From the NCBI GenBank assembly GCA_965637545.1, contig OZ281496.1, positions 12,214,001 through 12,278,000 on the forward strand: DNA of 64,000 nt, written 5' to 3'. This DNA is from Phallusia mammillata (taxonomy: Eukaryota). Numbering within the stretch: the stretch's first letter is position 1; each line of letters opens with the position of its first letter. Below, piece by piece: positions 580-17,629 of this stretch. The position numbers and the translations under genes were made by a program. The notes beneath the pieces were generated by a model. That model made no database searches. It saw only the letters and a list, made by a program, of their open reading frames with translations, and was not told the origin of the DNA.

Positions 580-1274
580 TGTTACGGACAAATTCACAAT
601 ATTTAAATGTGATTTTTATGCTTTCTTTCCCAAGTGCAACCATGCGTTACGTCTATTCCCAAGTGCATTGTTCTTTGTTAGTTTTGGGCCAATCCTAACT
701 TTTATATGTGGTCATGTGACTAAAACGTGCTTGGACTTAGCCACACCTTGTTCTAAAAGTGCAGTTTGTATGTTTTAGTGCAGTAATCTGTTAGAATCGA
801 CTTAGTTTAAATGTTTGTGTGTTAACCAAATGTCAGCAAGTTTACAAGTATGTTAATGTATAGCCATGTGAAGTGTTTCTAGTAACTTTTCGTTTGTTAT
901 TGTTGTTTGAATGTTTAGACGATAAAGCCAACACCATAATGTCAAACACCTAGGTACTGTGAACTTCAGAAATCTCAACTGCTCAAGTGCTTAACTGTCT
1001 CAATTTCCTCTATTCTGTATAGTCTTGACATCCACTGTGGCGCAATTCAGCTGTTTTGGATCTTGGATACGAACTGTATTTGTTGTCATTCGTGCACTGT
1101 TCTTGCACCTTCATCGCCATAATATAACACTGAAAACCACAGTTTGTGCAGTCTAGAGGGCAGTTGTGAATTACTGACTCATTGTACCTGATGATGGTAC
1201 CAACGAAGGCATTAGCCTAGGTTTGCCTAAAGTGAGCTTAGGCCGTGACTAGTCCTAAAATTTTGGACGTCACA
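580..1274 (+). repeat. 5' LTR of the BEL/Pao element
   Basis: TGTTACGGAC...GGACGTCACA; matches 8390-9084 except T709 versus C8519 (compared by eye). Confidence 0.98.
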
Positions 1275-1358
1275 TCATTTCTGAAGAAGCCAGACCCCTT
1301 TCTATTAAGAAAAGGTGTCTGAAATCTGCTGTCTGGCATTAGTGGTGTTGCAAATACA

Positions 1359-4300
1359 ATGCCTGGATCAAATTCTAGCACATCCTCTCATGAGGATGTG
1401 GACGGAGTGCTTCAAGAAAAGTTGCATTTCTTGAAATCATCTCGGAGTGGGCATTTGGGTGCTGTTACCAAAGCCGAAAATATTGTTTGTAACTTAATGC
1501 TAGATGTTTCTAATATCAAGGAAGTACCAGCTGCAAAGGAAGCTTTTGATAGTTCACTGACAAAGTGCTTGGACTGTTGCAAGGAATACCATTCTGTGAT
1601 TCCAGATTCACTCTACTCTCAGAAACAAGAGGCAGTGGACAAGATCAAGTCCCTGGAGGAAAAAGGGGACAACATAAATTCTATGTATCAAACATTTCTA
1701 CAAAATGCTGCTGTGGAGTTGGGTTCTACTGGTGGGCATTCGAAAAGCTCACATCACTCAACTGGGTCAAGATTGTCCTCTAAATCCAGTTCACATCGTT
1801 CTAGTAGAACAAGCTCAAGATCTTCACACCACTCACACTATTCCAAGGCTCCTAGTTTGAAATCATTCCGCTCTTCTTCTTCAATATCAAGCAGAAGCAC
1901 TACATACTCAATGAGGGAGGTGCGGCGTGCTCAGCTAGAAAACAAGCTGACAGAGTCAGAGGCACAATTAACTCTCCAAGCATCAGCTGATGCTGTTAAT
2001 GATGCACTGATGAAAGCTGAGGAGATAAAACGTAAGGCCAGAGAAGACGAGGATGCCTTAAAGATGATGCTTGAAGATGAAAAGGAAGAAAATGCCCAGC
2101 GAAGAAGGGCAGAAGAAGAGGCCATAGCCAAAAGAAGAGCAGAAGAAGAGGCAAATGCCATGCGTAAAAGGGCAGACGAAGAGGCAAATGCCATGCGTAA
2201 AAGGGCAGAAGAAGAGGCCATAGCCAAAAGAAGAAGAGAAGAAGCTGATGCAGAGAAAAGGGCGATTAGAAGAAAAATGGAACAGGCTGCAGCTCGACGG
2301 AAAAGAGAAGAGGAAAGGGCTGAAGCAATTTTAGCCAAGGCAAAAATGGAACATCGACAAAAATCTTACAATGCACAGTTGAAAGTGCAGCGCAAGAGGC
2401 ATGAGGTTGACCTGGTTGTACTTGAGGCTGAACCAGTGGGATCCTGTGATTCTCGTCATGAATACAGGTTGGATATGCCCCCACTAAATCAGATAGATGA
2501 CGCCACGGTGGGAAGCTCTGCTTGTCTACAGCAGTCTGCCCATGACCTAGCTCCGATGGACTGTCCAATGCCTGGTGAAATGCATACCATTTCTGGTTTC
2601 ACCCCTCTAGCCACAGCAAAGCTGCCACAGCCTGAATATCCTGTCGCTCATCCAGCAGAACAGCTAAATGTTTCTGCCGATCCATACTTGCCTGTATGTA
2701 CACAGACAGACATAAAGCAGGAGACTCACAGTCCTTCTATGGGGCCGGTCTCCAAGTACAAACCTCAGCCAGATGAGAGCTTCACCAAAGATGACTTTCA
2801 CTATGGAAAGGCCATGGTGGACTTGGTGGAGAGTACGAAAACCATGCTGCATGGCTTTACACTGCCCAAAAGGGGGCTCCCAAAGTTCTATGGGAATCCA
2901 ATGAATTACCACAACTTTATGAAGAAATTTGATGAGATGATCACAAGGCATTTTCCTGATCCTGCTGTACAACTTCAGTACCTTGTAGACATGTGTGAAG
3001 ACAAAGCCTATGATGTTGTCCATGGATGTTGTGCCACGAGCCCACCTGAATTGGGTCTTGCTACTGCTCGGGAGTTGCTGAGAGATAACTTCGGGCGCAT
3101 GGACTTGGTGGTAAATGCACATGTCAAAGAGTTGACCAAGGGTCCACCAATTAGGACTGGGGACAATGAAGGTCTTCGTTCTCTTGCTACAAGTATGACA
3201 AATGCTTTAATGGTTTTTCGATCTTTGGGTTGTGAGTCACAGTTGGACTATTCCCAATTCCTAGTGGACATATTTCAGCGACTACCCAAGCACATGCAAA
3301 ATACATTTGTCACAGAGGCCAGTTCACTCTACCGAAGGAATGGGAATGTGACATTCAGCAATCTGACATCGTACCTCAACCAGAAGGTGATGGATTCCAA
3401 CAACATGTTTGCGGATGCATTGACAACAGTTAAGGAAAGGGATCCAAAGAAGGACAAGCCCCAGAAGAAGAAAGAACATGCTGTGTTCTCTGCACAAACT
3501 ACTTTGGGCTCCACATCATGTGAACATGTTGACAAACCTAAACCTCCAGATCAAACAAGGAAGAAGAAGCCACAACCATGTGTGGTTTGTAACAAACCTC
3601 ATCCATTATGGGTATGTGATGAGTTCCAGAAAAAGAAACAGTTTGACCGTTGGACAACAGTCAAGAATAACAACTTATGCTTCAACTGCTTTTCACCAGA
3701 CCACATGGCAAATGAGTGTGTCTGCTCCAGAAAGTGCAAGTCTTGTGAAAAACCACATCATACTCTACTTCATCGTGATGAACAGCGAAATATAGAAAAA
3801 ACATCCACATCGACTGAGGAAAAGAAGAATGCTGAAAGTCCCAAGGAAAGCTCAACGACATATGTAGCCACTGTTACTACACCCCCTGCAGGAAGGGACA
3901 GGGTTAGACTCAAGGTGGTGCCAGTACATGTGTGGGGAAGGGATCTGAATCGTGTAGTGGAGACATATGCATTTCTGGATGAGGGATCTGACACTACATT
4001 CTGCACGTCAAATCTGAAACAGAGACTCAAGCTTGAAGGAAAACAAGTTTCCAGAAGACTTAATGGCATAAGTGGCAGTAAGGATCTGCAGGGATACGAG
4101 GTCGGACTGTCCCTACAGGGGATTCAAGAAACAGATTCAATCCGTATTGAGAATCTACTGACGGTGGATGCTCTACCAACACTGAAGAACAGTATACCTA
4201 CAATGGAAGATGTAAAGCATTATTCTCATCTGAGGGGATTGGACTTTCCAAAGTTACCTGATGCAGAAGTGGATATTCTCATTGGGGCCGGTACGCAGGA

Positions 4301-7300
4301 AGCCCATTCTATCAGGGAAGTGCGAACCGGGAAGCCAAGACAGCCAACAGCTATTCACACTGGACTTGGGTGGACCTTAGTTGGCACTGATGCATCAGAG
4401 GACAGTTGCAATGTTAACTTCGCCACAATTGGCAATAATGAACTACATGACATGTTCCAGAAGATGTATAATCATGACTTTATGGATGACAAGTGTTCAA
4501 ATGATGTCTCTCTATCTATGGAGGACAAAAGGGCACTCGCCATGATGAATTCGACTGTGCAAAGGAAAGGCAAGCATTATCAGCTTGCGCTACCATGGAA
4601 GAATAAAAATGTAAAGCTACCTTATAACCGTGGAACAGCCGAGAAACGCCTTCTTGGTTTAAAGAGACGATTAAAGACAGATCAGTCACTGTTCCAGAAG
4701 TACAGTGAAAAGATTAATGACTCGCTGAAGAATGGTCATGCCAGGAAAGTACCAGATGGAAAGGATCCACACCCGGGAAAGACTTGGTACATTCCACATC
4801 ACTGCTGCACTGGTGGAAAGTTTCGGGTTGTGTTTGACTGCGCTGCCAAGTATGCAGACACATCCCTCAATGAAAATCTCTTACAAGGACCTGATTTGAC
4901 CAACAACCTTGTTGGTGTTCTTCTTCGTTTTCGCCAGGAGAAGATTGCATTGATGGTTGACATTAAAGGAATGTTCCATCAGGTTTTTGTGGACCCAGAT
5001 GACTGTGATGCTCTGAGGTTTTTGTGGTGGCCAAATGATGACTTGTCCAAGCCACCTGAGGATTACCAGATGCTGGTGCATCTTTTTGGGGCAACTTCTT
5101 CTCCAAGTTGTGCCAGCTTTGCATTGAGAAAGGTTGCTGAGGATAATGAGAGCAATGCAACAAAGGAAACAACGGATACTGTCCTGCGGAATTTTTATGT
5201 AGATGATTGCCTGAAGTCGGTCAAGACTTTAGAGGAAGGTTCCCAGCTAGTCAAGGAACTGGATGAGCTACTTAAGTGTGGAGGATTTCACCTTACCAAG
5301 TACCTGAGTAACAGCAAAGAACTGTTAATGTCTATTAATGAAGATAACCTTGCTCCATCAGTGAAAGACATGGACTTGGATGGATTGCCAATCGAGAGAG
5401 CTTTGGGAGTGTACTTGAACACTGGTACGGACTGCTTCGAGGTCAAAGTGAAGTTGAAACCAAAGCCCTGCACAAGACGTGGAATTCTGTCAACAATAAG
5501 TCAGTTGTTTGACCCCATGGGGTTTGTGCAACCCTTTATCTTGCCAATCAAAAAGCTTATGCAAGAATTATGCAAAAGAAACATAGGATGGGATGAAGCT
5601 ATTCCCACCGAGTTTGAGGTGGCCTGGAAAAAGTGGCTGGGCAATTTATCACTGCTGGAATCAATTACTATTCCTAGATGCTTTAAAACAATGGACTACA
5701 TAAGTGCTGAGCTCCATTGCTTTTGTGATGCAAGCGAAACTGGTTATGGAGCTGTTTGCTACCTTCGCCTGGTAACTGGTGGTTCCTACCACTGCTCATT
5801 TGTGATGGGAAAGTCCAGAGTTTCCCCTTCAAAGGCAGTTACCATTCCCCGGCTTGAACTCACTGCAGCAGTGGTTGGTGTTAAACTAGCGCAGTTTGTG
5901 ATTCGTGAGTTGGATCTTGAGTTGGAAAAGGTTGTGTACTGGACAGACTCCACTTCTGTGCTTCAGTACATCAGAAATACATCACGCCGCTTTCCGACGT
6001 TTGTTGCCAATAGGCTGGCTGTGATTCAAGCAGCCACAGAACCAGAACAGTGGAGACATGTGGATACAAAGCAAAATCCTGCAGACATTGCATCTAGGGG
6101 TTTTTATCCTGACCAGGTGGACAAGGCAAAGGCATGGTTATCCGGTCCATCATTTTTGTGGAAAGAAGAAAGTTGCTGGCCAGAACAGCCAGCTGTGTTA
6201 CAATTGCCAGAAGACCATGAAGATGTTGAAGCCAACACAATTGTAGTAGAAATTGTGCAAAATGGTTTGGACAACTTGCTAGACAGATACTCTTCATACA
6301 ATGCTGTACTCAAGGCCACTGGTTGGTTGTTGCGGTTCAAGCAGTACATGATGTGTAAGTTTTCAGAGAAATTACGCAAACCTGCACCCAAGGCAGGTCT
6401 GCTGACGGCAGAGGAAATGGAAACAGCTGTCCATCAAGTGGTGAAGCTGGTTCAGCATCAAGCATTCGGATCTATGTCATCGGATCTTAAGGAATACCAG
6501 AGCTTTTCCCACTACTTGGAATCTCAGCATTCGAATGGATTACATATTCGAAACCGGGCTCTTGGTAGACTTAGCCCTATGAAAATAAATGGCACTATGA
6601 GAGTGGGAGGTCGCCTACAACATGCAACTCTGCCAGAGGACATGAAGCACCCTATGATCTTGCCTAGTCGTCACCATGTTACTGGGCTGATTATACATCA
6701 TTACCATCAGCGAGAAGGACATAGTGGAACTCAACACGTTCTAGCAGCCACCCGTGAGAGGTACTGGATTCTCAAAGGCCAATCATCTGTTCGTCACTAC
6801 TTGAAGGACTGCAGAAAATGTCGTTTTTGGAAAGCACAAGCTGGTAGGCAGTTGATGGCACCCTTGCCGGTTTGTCGTGTTGAGTCTGGACAGTTACCCT
6901 TTACTCATGCAGGGGTTGACTACTTTGGCCCTCTAATGGTAAAAATTGGACGCAGTCATGTGAAACGATATGGCTGCATTTTTACTTGTATGGCTACAAG
7001 GGCTGTACATTTAGAGCTAGCTGGCTCACTGGACACTAGTTCATTCATACAGGCACTTCGTAGATTTGTGCTGAGAAGAGGATCTACCACTAAACACATA
7101 TATAGTGACAATGGAACCAACTTCATTGGAGCTGACAGAGAACTCCGCGAAGGGATTAAAGCATGGAATCAACAACAGATACATACAGAGCTACTACAAA
7201 AGGGAATTGAATGGCATTTCAATCCCCCAGCTGCCAGCCACCAAGGTGGTGTATGGGAGAGAATGATTCGCTCTGTGCGAAAAATTTTGCAGTCACTGAC

Positions 7301-7790
7301 TGGAGACAAGATATTGTCTGAGGAATCTTTGAACACCTTCCTGATAGAAGTGGAATCGATCTTAAACAACAGACCACTGACACCTGTCAGTGATGATCCA
7401 AAGGATGGGTCTGCTTTGAAGCCCATTACTTTGTTAGCTGGTGGAATTGAAGCTACATTGCCACCTGGAGAATTCATCAAAGCAGATGGCTACAAGAAAT
7501 CCTGGCGCGCAGTCCAATGGTTGAGCGACCAGTTTTGGAAGCGCTGGGTGAAGGACTATTTGCCACTTCTGCAAAAACGCCAGAAGTGGTTGCAACCTGA
7601 GAAGAACTTTGAAGTTGGAGATGTTGTGTTGGTAATGGATGCCAATACAAAACGAGGAGTATGGCCCAAAGGACTGGTCGAGGAGGTCTTTCCAGATCAT
7701 GACGGGATGGTGCGGAGAGTTCGAGTCAAAACTTATGACTCAACTTTGATGAGGGACATCCGAAAGCTGTGTTTACTTGAATGTGGCTAA
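1359..7790 (+). CDS. BEL/Pao Gag-Pol polyprotein, 2143 aa, uninterrupted
   Basis: Zn knuckles CVVCNKPHPLWVC, CFNCFSPDHMANEC and CKSCEKPHHTLLH; protease FLDEGSD; RT DIKGMF...YVDDCL; RNase H FCDAS/PRLEL/TDS; integrase HHCC plus GVDYFGP, SDNGTNF and WERMIR; C-terminal LQKRQKW...LCLLE typical of BEL/Pao. Confidence 0.97.
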   Translation: MPGSNSSTSSHEDVDGVLQEKLHFLKSSRSGHLGAVTKAENIVCNLMLDVSNIKEVPAAKEAFDSSLTKCLDCCKEYHSVIPDSLYSQKQEAVDKIKSLEEKGDNINSMYQTFLQNAAVELGSTGGHSKSSHHSTGSRLSSKSSSHRSSRTSSRSSHHSHYSKAPSLKSFRSSSSISSRSTTYSMREVRRAQLENKLTESEAQLTLQASADAVNDALMKAEEIKRKAREDEDALKMMLEDEKEENAQRRRAEEEAIAKRRAEEEANAMRKRADEEANAMRKRAEEEAIAKRRREEADAEKRAIRRKMEQAAARRKREEERAEAILAKAKMEHRQKSYNAQLKVQRKRHEVDLVVLEAEPVGSCDSRHEYRLDMPPLNQIDDATVGSSACLQQSAHDLAPMDCPMPGEMHTISGFTPLATAKLPQPEYPVAHPAEQLNVSADPYLPVCTQTDIKQETHSPSMGPVSKYKPQPDESFTKDDFHYGKAMVDLVESTKTMLHGFTLPKRGLPKFYGNPMNYHNFMKKFDEMITRHFPDPAVQLQYLVDMCEDKAYDVVHGCCATSPPELGLATARELLRDNFGRMDLVVNAHVKELTKGPPIRTGDNEGLRSLATSMTNALMVFRSLGCESQLDYSQFLVDIFQRLPKHMQNTFVTEASSLYRRNGNVTFSNLTSYLNQKVMDSNNMFADALTTVKERDPKKDKPQKKKEHAVFSAQTTLGSTSCEHVDKPKPPDQTRKKKPQPCVVCNKPHPLWVCDEFQKKKQFDRWTTVKNNNLCFNCFSPDHMANECVCSRKCKSCEKPHHTLLHRDEQRNIEKTSTSTEEKKNAESPKESSTTYVATVTTPPAGRDRVRLKVVPVHVWGRDLNRVVETYAFLDEGSDTTFCTSNLKQRLKLEGKQVSRRLNGISGSKDLQGYEVGLSLQGIQETDSIRIENLLTVDALPTLKNSIPTMEDVKHYSHLRGLDFPKLPDAEVDILIGAGTQEAHSIREVRTGKPRQPTAIHTGLGWTLVGTDASEDSCNVNFATIGNNELHDMFQKMYNHDFMDDKCSNDVSLSMEDKRALAMMNSTVQRKGKHYQLALPWKNKNVKLPYNRGTAEKRLLGLKRRLKTDQSLFQKYSEKINDSLKNGHARKVPDGKDPHPGKTWYIPHHCCTGGKFRVVFDCAAKYADTSLNENLLQGPDLTNNLVGVLLRFRQEKIALMVDIKGMFHQVFVDPDDCDALRFLWWPNDDLSKPPEDYQMLVHLFGATSSPSCASFALRKVAEDNESNATKETTDTVLRNFYVDDCLKSVKTLEEGSQLVKELDELLKCGGFHLTKYLSNSKELLMSINEDNLAPSVKDMDLDGLPIERALGVYLNTGTDCFEVKVKLKPKPCTRRGILSTISQLFDPMGFVQPFILPIKKLMQELCKRNIGWDEAIPTEFEVAWKKWLGNLSLLESITIPRCFKTMDYISAELHCFCDASETGYGAVCYLRLVTGGSYHCSFVMGKSRVSPSKAVTIPRLELTAAVVGVKLAQFVIRELDLELEKVVYWTDSTSVLQYIRNTSRRFPTFVANRLAVIQAATEPEQWRHVDTKQNPADIASRGFYPDQVDKAKAWLSGPSFLWKEESCWPEQPAVLQLPEDHEDVEANTIVVEIVQNGLDNLLDRYSSYNAVLKATGWLLRFKQYMMCKFSEKLRKPAPKAGLLTAEEMETAVHQVVKLVQHQAFGSMSSDLKEYQSFSHYLESQHSNGLHIRNRALGRLSPMKINGTMRVGGRLQHATLPEDMKHPMILPSRHHVTGLIIHHYHQREGHSGTQHVLAATRERYWILKGQSSVRHYLKDCRKCRFWKAQAGRQLMAPLPVCRVESGQLPFTHAGVDYFGPLMVKIGRSHVKRYGCIFTCMATRAVHLELAGSLDTSSFIQALRRFVLRRGSTTKHIYSDNGTNFIGADRELREGIKAWNQQQIHTELLQKGIEWHFNPPAASHQGGVWERMIRSVRKILQSLTGDKILSEESLNTFLIEVESILNNRPLTPVSDDPKDGSALKPITLLAGGIEATLPPGEFIKADGYKKSWRAVQWLSDQFWKRWVKDYLPLLQKRQKWLQPEKNFEVGDVVLVMDANTKRGVWPKGLVEEVFPDHDGMVRRVRVKTYDSTLMRDIRKLCLLECG

Positions 7791-8389
7791 ATTTCTACTT
7801 TCTGTGCATGCTCTTTCATATTTGTAACCTTTTCATTCTTCATTACACCAACATATATGCCTCTTCACATGTCATTCTTGCTAAGTCTGTACTACCTATA
7901 TGTCTTTCATCTTGCCTTATAGCCTTATCATGCATGTTAGTGTTGTGTAGTGTGTTCTTCATAAATTGTAAACATTCCGAATACCTCTTCAACTAAACAT
8001 TGTAATGTCTGTACTGATAACAACCAAGTATTGTGAAAATGTTTTGTTTTCTAAGCCTTTCTGTGTTTTTTACCTTGCCAAAATCTGTCATTGTTTTTTA
8101 CCTCCTAGAACAATATTTGGTGCAAAATTTGTAGTTAATTGTGAAGCATTTGAAACTGTGCATTTGATACCATTCTTGTCAGTATGTAACATATTCACTC
8201 AGTCATAGTTGTGTCTTTGTTTTGTTTTTAAGCCCAGGATGGAAATGTTTGTGTGGGTACTTTGGTTTGGGTCAGTTACCAAATTTGTAATCACAGCTCT
8301 CTCTGTGACCAACCTTCCTGTGCCTTGTTCTTTGTCCGTTTTTGTTTTGAAAAATGTTTCCATGCTGTCTGACATTTTTGGGGCCGGAA

Positions 8390-9084
8390 TGTTACGGACA
8401 AATTCACAATATTTAAATGTGATTTTTATGCTTTCTTTCCCAAGTGCAACCATGCGTTACGTCTATTCCCAAGTGCATTGTTCTTTGTTAGTTTTGGGCC
8501 AATCCTAACTTTTATATGCGGTCATGTGACTAAAACGTGCTTGGACTTAGCCACACCTTGTTCTAAAAGTGCAGTTTGTATGTTTTAGTGCAGTAATCTG
8601 TTAGAATCGACTTAGTTTAAATGTTTGTGTGTTAACCAAATGTCAGCAAGTTTACAAGTATGTTAATGTATAGCCATGTGAAGTGTTTCTAGTAACTTTT
8701 CGTTTGTTATTGTTGTTTGAATGTTTAGACGATAAAGCCAACACCATAATGTCAAACACCTAGGTACTGTGAACTTCAGAAATCTCAACTGCTCAAGTGC
8801 TTAACTGTCTCAATTTCCTCTATTCTGTATAGTCTTGACATCCACTGTGGCGCAATTCAGCTGTTTTGGATCTTGGATACGAACTGTATTTGTTGTCATT
8901 CGTGCACTGTTCTTGCACCTTCATCGCCATAATATAACACTGAAAACCACAGTTTGTGCAGTCTAGAGGGCAGTTGTGAATTACTGACTCATTGTACCTG
9001 ATGATGGTACCAACGAAGGCATTAGCCTAGGTTTGCCTAAAGTGAGCTTAGGCCGTGACTAGTCCTAAAATTTTGGACGTCACA
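8390..9084 (+). repeat. 3' LTR of the BEL/Pao element
   Basis: Direct repeat of 580-1274, preceded by the PPT and followed by the TSD CTTAG. Confidence 0.98.
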
Positions 9085-9124
9085 CTTAGTCTAAGAATGT
9101 TTTAAAAAATTGGCGCAGTATATC

Positions 9125-15127: not shown

Positions 15128-16080
15128 TTGGTATTCTTGTTGTTTCATTGTGCCAGGCAACTCACACTAAACATACATCTTATATATGTGATGTTTGTGT
15201 AAGAATATTTGCAATAAGAGGACATTGGAAAACACACATGTTTACACAATCCAGTAAGAAACCTTATCGATGTGATGTTTGTGAAAAACGCTTCAGCGAA
15301 AATGGAAGTTTGAAAAGGCACATGTTGACGCACACCAATCCTAAACCGTATCGATGTAATATTTGTGAAAAATGCTTTATACGAGGTGATTATTTGAAAA
15401 CACACATGTTGACACATACCAAAGAAAAGCCTCATCGATGTGATGTTTGTGAAAAATGCTTTAACCAAGGTGGTAATTTAAAAAGGCACATGTTGACACA
15501 CACCAACGAAAAACCTCATCGATGTGATGTTTGTGATAAAAGATTTAGTCGGCGTGGAAATTTAAAAAGACACATGTTGACACACACCAAAGAGAAACCA
15601 CATCGCTGCATTGTTTGCGAAAAGCGCTTCAGCGAAAGTGGAAATTTGAAAAAGCACATGTTGACACACACTAAAGAGAAACCTCATCAATGTGATGTTT
15701 GTAAAAAAAGCATTACCTGGGGTAGAAACTTGAAAACACACATGTTGACACACACCAATCAGAATGTGACATTTGTGAAAAATGCTTTAAAGGTGGAAAT
15801 TTAAAAAGGCACAAGTTGACTCACACCAAAGAGAACCTTATCGATGTAACATTTCTGAAAATTGCTTCAGCCATGGTGGAAACTTAAAAACACACATGTT
15901 CACACACACCAACGAAAAACCTCATCAATGTGATGTTTGTGAAAAAAGATTTAACATCAGTGGAAATTTAAAAACACAAATGTTGACGCACACCAGTCAG
16001 AAGCTTTAGCCATGTGATGTTTGTGAAAAAACGCTACACCACAAGTGGGAGTTTAAAAAGTCACATTACGACACACAAAA
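15128..16080 (+). pseudogene. Tandem C2H2 zinc-finger exon: about 11 fingers, 6 intact, the four 3' fingers frameshifted or degenerate
   Basis: 84-bp period; C-x2-C-x12-H-x3-H with HTKEKPHRC-type linkers in ORF 15148-15804; finger-like sequence continues out of frame to about 16080; possible splice acceptor TTGTTTTTCAG ending at 15127. Could be a truncated but expressed gene. Confidence 0.85.
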
Positions 16081-17629
16081 AGACAAACTCCATTGATGTC
16101 ATACATCTACAGGTTTAACAGTAGTTACAATTTTAAACAAACACGTTATGATGCACACTCGCGAAAACTGGTGTACGATTTTAAATTATGTGTGTTGGCT
16201 TGCACCAAAGTGAAATTCCTCTCGTATGTTTTGTGAAGGAAATAACAAATAGCACCAATAGACATTTGAAAACACGCTGGTGTGCTGTTTGTAAAAATGT
16301 TTAACGCATCTAGTTTATTGGAAATAAGGCATTTAAAGTTTATCTTGCAAATAGGCAAAAGTTTATAACAATGCCCTAAAAGAATAGCGAATGTTAAACC
16401 AGGTCATACTCAACCAATGAATTTGTTTTACAAGTTTAAACCCATTCAATAATACAACGCAACACATTGCTAAATCGAAAATAGGGAAGAACTGGATTTC
16501 TTACTGCTTGACATATAGTAGTGGTTTTCTAGATTACTTCTTTCGGGGCTTGCCAAAGCGACATGTAGGGTAAATTTTATATAGTTTTGCTAAATTACCC
16601 TGCAGTTTATCACGTCCGGTCAACACCGAGACCATATTAAGACTGTGCACTGACAAGACCTTAATTTGTCAATAAGTTCAATTTGTTGCAACAGGATGTT
16701 CGTCAATGCTCATCAGAAAACTGAAGAACACAATGTAAATCGTCATTTGGGGTCTAGTGTAAACAAAGGTTGTTTTACGGGTTCGTGTTTCTTGATGATT
16801 ATCACTATAGCTTCTGTTTAATAGTTGATGTTTAAAATATCTATCCCGTGTGGGTCTGTCTGTTTCTAACATGAAAGGCAACTAATCTGACCGCGTGTTG
16901 TACGTAAAGCTACTAATTTAAAGGTAAAACTAGTTGCAGAGATACACGTTGTCGATAGGTATTGTGACATTATTGATGTGCATGCGTCACTTTGTTCCAA
17001 AATGCATGACAGGGATTTCCTTGTTCCATGTGAACCAAATCAGTGGCAATTTTCTACGCTTGAAAAACCACATATAATACGAAAACGTTCTAAAGGCGGA
17101 GGTCGCAATTGCACAAATGATTACTGTCTAAATTGCATCATGTACGCGCTACAACTGGCCACAGTAGCCCAGTTGAGGGTTTATGCAGTGGCGAGGTAAA
17201 GCTAGTCTGTAAGTTGGTGAAATTCGTTAGTACGATTGGTTGGTCTGCTATGCTACAACAACACAGGTTTAATATCCACTGCTTAGATATTTTATCTGTG
17301 GTCTGTATTCTTGCATTAGATTGGAGAAGCTAAAAAAACCTATTTAAGCGAAAACGTGACTGCGTTTTTCAAACGAAGCAAGGGACGCAAAAATTAATAT
17401 TGCATGTCTGCCTGATAAAAACACTTAACTTCCAATCAAACGTTACTTCGTGGGCGGGGTGTTTGACACCCCTGTTTTAACCCATTTGACATCTGTTGTA
17501 AAGCTCAACGTTTAACACTCAATAAGTTAAAGTGGAATTGTTGCCAGTCGATGCCGGTCAGCTCTTCAGTCGAAAATCAGTAAAATTGTGAAAAAGTTTT
17601 ATTTATTATTCAGCATTTTTTTCAACATG

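Follow-up and report, generated by a model that had tools for sequence, protein, structure and literature searches.

Self-priming of reverse transcription is established for Tf1 of Schizosaccharomyces pombe and is also attributed to Tf2 of the same yeast (Levin and co-workers, in PMC3601003 refs 44-45; PMC6317226), and the primer of Tf1 is formed by the first 11 nt of the mRNA. Self-priming has also been inferred for the Tf1/sushi group, for the plant Tcn1 clade, and for the Ty1/copia TAR lineage (PMC6317226; PMC3601003). In the Tcn1 clade (Ty3/gypsy) and the TAR lineage (Ty1/copia: Houba, Osr-1), the prediction rests on complementarity between the LTR and the post-LTR sequence without a tRNA site (PMC6317226); on these predictions, self-priming is therefore not restricted to one superfamily. 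Another kind of non-canonical site without TGG is found in copia-type elements, which are primed by host tRNA halves (1/2 tRNA-Met, 1/2 tRNA-Ile; PMC6317226), the fragment being the same across families in a host. For BEL/Pao elements, the surveys PMC3118150 and PMC554778 do not discuss primer sites and do not mention self-priming. No claim of BEL/Pao self-priming was found in the open-access full text that we searched; subscription journals were outside the scope of this search, and priority elsewhere cannot be excluded.

The element described here occupies positions 580-9084 of the analyzed window, a 64,000-nt stretch (C3:12214001-12278000) of the ~240-Mb genome of Phallusia mammillata. Its main parts are as follows.

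575-579, + strand: 5' target-site duplication CTTAG; the same 5-mer lies at 9085-9089.
580-1274, + strand: 5' LTR of 695 nt with TGT..ACA ends (TG..CA), set by alignment to 8390-9084 with 1 mismatch.
1359-7790, + strand: single gag-pol open reading frame of 2143 aa, with the Pfam domains DUF1759, RVT_1, Peptidase_A17 (Pao), Integrase_H2C2, and DUF5641.
8380-8389, + strand: polypurine-like tract GGGGCCGGAA, seen in the sequence and adjoining the 3' LTR; most relatives have GGGGCC(G/T)G there.
8390-9084, + strand: 3' LTR, set by the LTR alignment, with the second copy of the 10-mer discussed below at 8774-8783.
9085-9089, + strand: 3' target-site duplication CTTAG, seen in the sequence.

The open reading frame runs from the gag domain DUF1759 through the reverse transcriptase and an integrase with an H2C2 zinc domain to the C-terminal DUF5641. 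A Pao-type aspartic peptidase is present in pol (Peptidase_A17, PF05380, E = 3e-51, residues 1372-1531), and the closest proteins are ascidian polyproteins annotated as Pao. With this peptidase, the domain order, the TG..CA LTRs, and a short target duplication all in place, the element is a complete BEL/Pao LTR retrotransposon. Canonical BEL/Pao members (Belpaoviridae/Semotivirus: Pao, BEL, roo, Sinbad) have the same protein architecture, the same LTR ends, and likewise a target duplication of 5 bp. The element is intact and young, the two LTRs differing at 1/695 bases. At least seven full copies were found in the genome, with 93-100% identity over a 601-nt LTR-to-gag query. The seven full copies carry distinct 5-bp target duplications (CTTAG, GCTAC, GTATG, AGAAC, ATGAG, ATTGG, and one within a TA repeat); the family has therefore transposed repeatedly and recently with the self-complementary design described below.

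Several features of the locus were recorded beside this architecture. The tract 5' of the 3' LTR is nearly invariant from tunicates to Lingula in all fetched relatives, reading GGGGCCGG, then A/T, then TGT; for a "polypurine" tract, the one at 8380-8389 is unusually well conserved and contains G/C. The open reading frame has 2137 aa in other genomic copies vs 2143 aa here. At 2115-2177, in a repetitive, charged, alanine-rich part of gag, 63 nt are missing in frame from one RNA contig (run X1). The ends of the skipped segment are GA..AC, and it is more readily taken for a repeat-number variant than for an intron. A tandem array of about 11 copies of diverged 84-nt units lies at 15160-16115 of the window.

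The internal region of the element starts with TCATTTCTGAAG, without TGG. Three short features around the LTR end are central to the following analysis.

964-973, + strand: LTR segment CTTCAGAAAT, the exact complement of 1277-1286 and the proposed self-primer, whose 3' end at 973 would be extended.
1275-1276, + strand: 2-nt spacer TC from the LTR end to the primer-binding site, seen in the sequence; offset 2 also occurs in 5 relatives.
1277-1286, + strand: putative primer-binding site ATTTCTGAAG, able to pair with the LTR of the same element, identified by complement and fold.

The post-LTR site is the exact reverse complement of the LTR segment over 10/10 nt at offset 2, and the pairing ends on both sides. 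An earlier note, made without database searches, had claimed this match 2 nt past the LTR with its sharp ends and the absence of TGG, and all of these held. Its chance estimate of 7e-4, for one offset and uniform composition, is of the same order as the values we computed. A match of at least 10 nt at offsets 0-5 occurred with a frequency of 0.0041 when the LTR was shuffled 20,000 times under a first-order Markov model, and a match of at least 10 nt occurred with a frequency of 0.0014 in 4,964 internal control windows of the same element. A single 10-mer match of this level (p ~0.001-0.004) is expected occasionally when many elements are scanned, which speaks for the reading that the complement is fortuitous and without function. 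The 10-nt match alone is merely suggestive, and it is the comparative data that give it significance.

Folding of the 964-1289 RNA is more stable than that of shuffled versions (z = -3.16). In the minimum-energy and the centroid predictions alike, 964-972/973 closes onto the post-LTR site. The same pairing is present in the minimum-energy structure of 5/6 tunicate RNAs.

Within the Phallusia genome, CTTCAGAAAT is unaltered in all fetched LTR copies except four, which are a three-copy subfamily and the copy L030. In the subfamily (L008 and L024, which are the 5' and the 3' LTR of one element, and L026), T replaces C at 964. The sole full copy of the subfamily has A in place of G at 1286, so that the pair with T964 is kept by a compensatory double change. 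L030 has one G-to-C change within the LTR segment. One decayed copy (L007) carries a mismatch in the post-LTR site, which is a point against the proposal. Short repeats of the CTCAACTG type at 974-1000 expand and contract between copies (L006, L015, L019, L023), with the primer segment fixed.

A word search with pol residues 1100-1900 retrieved thousands of BEL/Pao polyproteins, the nearest pol match being that of the ascidian Clavelina lepadiformis (60% identity). Eleven relatives from other species were fetched with their flanks, their LTRs were set by self-alignment and target duplications, and the same complement test was applied. A complementary pair of their own, with differing letters, is present in 10/11 relatives, contiguous in 6 and junction-spanning in 4. 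The contiguous pairs join 9-13 nt at post-LTR offset 2-5 to a mid-LTR segment, and the sequence is different each time.

Clavelina (L068): 12 nt, offset 2, site ATTTCTACAAAA, LTR position 360 of 500.
Styela (L070): 10 nt, offset 2, site ATTACAAATA, LTR position 398 of 752.
Styela, second family (L072): 13 nt, offset 2, site ATTTAAAAATAGT, LTR position 487 of 744.
L069 (ENA assembly): 9 nt, offset 4, site ATATCTGCA, LTR position 410 of 799.
L071 (ENA assembly): 9 nt, offset 5, site ATTTCTACG, LTR position 382 of 603.
Lingula (L078): 10 nt, offset 2, site GTGAAACATT, LTR position 184 of 291.

The control frequency per element ranged from 0/4964 windows up to 0.022, and multiplying the six tunicate frequencies alone gives a product below 1e-14. 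A chance complement is all but excluded by this product, by the recurrence of the pair at the same place with other letters in 10/11 relatives, and by the compensatory change within the family. In L071, TGG lies two bases past the LTR and the 9-mer matches its own LTR, while its sister L069 has no TGG. In a quick maximum-likelihood tree, three groups were recovered: the tunicate-type elements, six in number (SH-aLRT 98); the echinoderm elements, three in number (100); and Lingula with the two hemichordates (100). Collectively, the pairing and its evolutionary maintenance at the position where the minus strand starts are shown by these data.

In the sea-urchin, starfish, and acorn-worm relatives, no contiguous complement was found beyond a maximum of 6 nt, except for the 8-nt match of the hemichordate Ptychodera (L076), whose LTR end is irregular and which stands as a further point against the proposal. 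We searched these LTRs for junctions by joining any GT to any downstream AG inside the LTR and applying the complement test to the product. Four elements, from three echinoderms and one hemichordate, gain the complement only on removal of a predicted LTR intron with consensus splice sites. A slash marks the splice point in the following list.

S. purpuratus (L073): junction AGTTG/TGAAC, donor G/GTAAGC, acceptor TTGTTGTTGTTTACAG/, site GTTCACAACT at offset 5.
Patiria (L075): junction AATCG/TGAAC, donor GTAAGC, acceptor ..AATTACAG/, site GTTCACGATT at offset 5.
Lytechinus variegatus (L077): junction AGTTG/CTAAC, donor GTGAGT, acceptor TGTTTATTTGTTTCAG/, site GTTAGCAACT at offset 5.
Glandiceps (L074): junction TCTAAG/AAC, donor AAG/GTGAGT, acceptor TTTTATTTTCTTGTAG/, site GTTCTTAGA at offset 2.

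Without a splice-strength filter, junction matches were found in 3-8% of control windows. With the filter (donor GT[AG]AG; acceptor YAG after at least 8/12 pyrimidines), 0 control windows gave a match as long as the one observed in S. purpuratus, Glandiceps, and L. variegatus. The Patiria acceptor is one pyrimidine short of the filter and is positionally homologous to the sea-urchin acceptor. In the three echinoderms, the exon-1 half and the exon-2 half both co-vary with the site. In Ptychodera, exon 1 and the donor are conserved as in Glandiceps, and neither an acceptor nor a junction match was present. No junction-spanning complement was found in the tunicate or Lingula elements. The primer segment of these echinoderm and hemichordate elements appears to be assembled by splicing of an LTR intron, an inference drawn from sequence alone. 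The retention of the intron in both progeny LTRs is unexplained and counts against it. The spliced type would need either splicing of the 5' LTR copy with the 3' copy left intact, or priming in trans between co-packaged RNAs.

We then consider a host primer. In this rival explanation, a host tRNA, a tRNA fragment, or another host small RNA primes the element, and the LTR match is incidental. It is supported by the known half-tRNA priming of copia-type elements and by the incomplete testing of the tRNA set. When the whole genome was searched for the reverse complement of 1275-1291 with up to 2 mismatches allowed, only element copies and unrelated single sites were returned, none of them tRNA-like, and no Rfam family matched in 560-1420 of the window. 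The Rfam tRNA search of the genome, which was a partial sampling, recovered one tandem Lys/Glu tRNA array only, and the longest complement to the recovered tRNAs, just three species (Lys-UUU, Glu-CUC, Glu-UUC), is 7 nt. This array, at C1:30.95-31.02 Mb (L038-L067), is long and alternates tRNA-Lys(UUU) and tRNA-Glu(CUC) with a period of ~324 bp and occasional tRNA-Glu(UUC) units. No credible tRNA-type site was seen in the window element or in its eleven fetched relatives. The site varies between families and always matches its own LTR; the two Styela families live in one host yet differ in their sites, which is evidence against a primer supplied to both by the host. In this respect the elements differ from copia-type half-tRNA priming, as the site here tracks the element's own LTR. 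Priming by a host RNA is thus rated as very unlikely.

Another explanation accepts that the pairing is real and selected and gives it a different role, such as packaging, dimerisation, translation control, or a stem of the U5-leader type, with something else as the primer. In its favor, covariation proves pairing and not priming, and the fold of 964-1289 is more stable than shuffles. Retroviral primer-binding sites are known to be flanked by conserved stems. Against it, the paired segment lies exactly at the required minus-strand start, 2-5 nt past the LTR, in all 11 positives including the window element, and none of the 11 has an alternative primer site between the LTR and gag. We regard this explanation as unlikely.

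Self-priming with the element's own RNA is likely the best explanation for the element; cutting of the RNA and its extension are inferred by analogy with Tf1, and the precise 5' end of the RNA is an inference as well. The LTR-derived stretch 964-973, in the genomic RNA itself or in another copy packaged with it, would fold back on 1277-1286. The RNA would be cut after 973, presumably by the element RNase H as in Tf1, and synthesis from the new 3'-OH would proceed across the spacer, U5, and R as far as 974. The resulting strong-stop DNA would then transfer to the 3' R, in the part downstream of 974. The site would be regenerated from the primer during replication, and this regeneration would also account for the compensatory change of the L008 subfamily. 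What the data provide is the absence of a plausible host primer in the partial tRNA set and the demonstration of recent transposition; cutting and extension remain inferred by analogy. Against self-priming, the duplexes are short and A/U-rich, and neither RNA cleavage nor cDNA starting at the primer has been directly demonstrated. Self-priming is still likely overall.

The RNA 5' end bears on how close this likeness to Tf1 may be. Public runs containing the element were kept as contigs only, and contigs cannot map starts or prove RNA ends. Two features of the LTR are relevant.

899-918, + strand: degenerate version of the spliced leader (16 nt in ascidians), with the AG at its end (917-918) as trans-splice acceptor, identified with a contig of run X5 and the leader sequence of PMC1488885 Table 1.
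1117-1140, + strand: possible poly(A) signal/site region, weak, with AATATAA at 1117-1123 and contig stops.

The X5 contig covers 917-1617 and is preceded by AGAGTACGGG, a sequence that the literature gives for the end of the SMART template-switch oligo, followed by ATTCTATTTGAATA. Together with the AG at 917-918, ATTCTATTTGAATA makes up the 16-nt ascidian spliced leader (PMC1488885 Table 1). The leader is joined at 919, and an RNA with the leader trans-spliced at 918/919, 45 nt upstream of 964, therefore exists. This junction is solid as a junction and is not proof of the 5' end of the genomic RNA. The primer segment may start 46 nt into the genome-encoded RNA (62 nt including the 16-nt leader) and not at its first base. 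It is also possible that the X5 contig merges a product derived from the 3' LTR with the genomic RNA 5' end, which is conceivable because R is common to both RNA ends, and a start near 964 is not excluded. In six tunicate LTRs, the primer segment is preceded at a distance of 24-33 nt by A/T-rich motifs that resemble a TATA box, and these would fit a start at the segment. Contigs of X8 and X13 run from 580 to 1119/1137, with no cover until ~1700; this is only a hint of poly(A), as contigs prove no RNA end.

We also considered the leader as part of the primer and rejected it, as a spliced-leader-like motif is not conserved beside the segment in other tunicate LTRs. The leader itself recurs in several settings. 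An older LTR copy (L027) reads TTTATTTGAATAAG/ACGATAA at the place of 899-919, and the leader may at one time have been copied into the LTR. The Clavelina LTR has, at 418-433 and downstream of its primer segment, a near-perfect leader 16-mer, TTTCTATTTGAATAAG, followed by GT like the donor of the SL RNA gene. At least 77 genomic sites carry the 16-nt leader followed by related bases, vs 0 sites in the reversed control. Many of these sites form pairs on one strand at a spacing of 3.4-5.9 kb, as LTR pairs of other retrotransposon families would (for example, C7:13571624/13576673, C1:2666701/2672638, C5:22248998/22253385, and C6:253610/257997). Unrelated MITE-like insertions are found in LTR copies at the equivalent of 918-920 (L009, L021) and near 1150 (L018); L009 and L021 are two different loci hit at the same TTTAGAC site, which adjoins the trans-splice acceptor.

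The earlier note had inferred self-priming on the supposition that transcription starts near 964. The start is not shown, the SL junction at 919 being the only 5'-end evidence; the inference is supported and extended to relatives. The note had named three observations that would refute it, and none was met. No start well downstream of 964 was seen in the contig data, which cannot map starts. No tRNA or tRNA fragment matching 1277 onward was found by the genome pattern search and Rfam, with the tRNA set only partly sampled. Relatives that keep the post-LTR sequence without the LTR complement were not encountered, 10/11 having their own different pair.

Compared with Tf1/Tf2 and the Tf1/sushi group, the element is alike in having no tRNA site and a post-LTR segment of ~10 nt complementary to its own LTR-derived RNA, in keeping the pairing among relatives, and in closing the predicted fold by the primer-site pairing. 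The Tf1/sushi elements are Ty3/gypsy chromoviruses, whereas pol here is BEL/Pao; the element is inferred to be Tf1-like in its working and is not a member of that lineage. In Tf1 the primer coincides with the 5' end of the mRNA, whereas such a coincidence is not shown here and the SL-joined end lies upstream. A primer behind a long 5' leader, unlike that of Tf1, could pose an unsolved problem for plus-strand transfer. A further difference from Tf1 is the splitting of the segment by a predicted intron in the ambulacrarian relatives. The Tcn1 and TAR elements, which are alike in the basis of their prediction, come from plants and belong to the other two superfamilies, and a spliced primer has not been described for them.

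The same design probably extends across the sampled marine-invertebrate BEL/Pao clade (tunicates, a brachiopod, echinoderms, and a hemichordate), with priming itself inferred. A bolder reading, which we hold to be as likely wrong as right, is that a whole clade of marine-invertebrate BEL/Pao elements self-primes. On that reading, the echinoderm and hemichordate primers would exist only in spliced RNA, splicing would license reverse transcription, and the sea-squirt elements would interact with SL trans-splicing in the LTR. To our knowledge, there is no earlier case of splicing creating a reverse-transcription primer, and the junction-spanning primers would be the first.

What is new here is likely self-priming in BEL/Pao, which of the three LTR superfamilies has received the least study, possibly with a primer that depends on splicing. 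If true, self-primers would be present in all three LTR superfamilies, and the finding would bear on whether tRNA priming derives from hairpin priming, as has been proposed (PMC3601003). It would also account for the failure of annotation tools that seek tRNA sites on these abundant marine elements.
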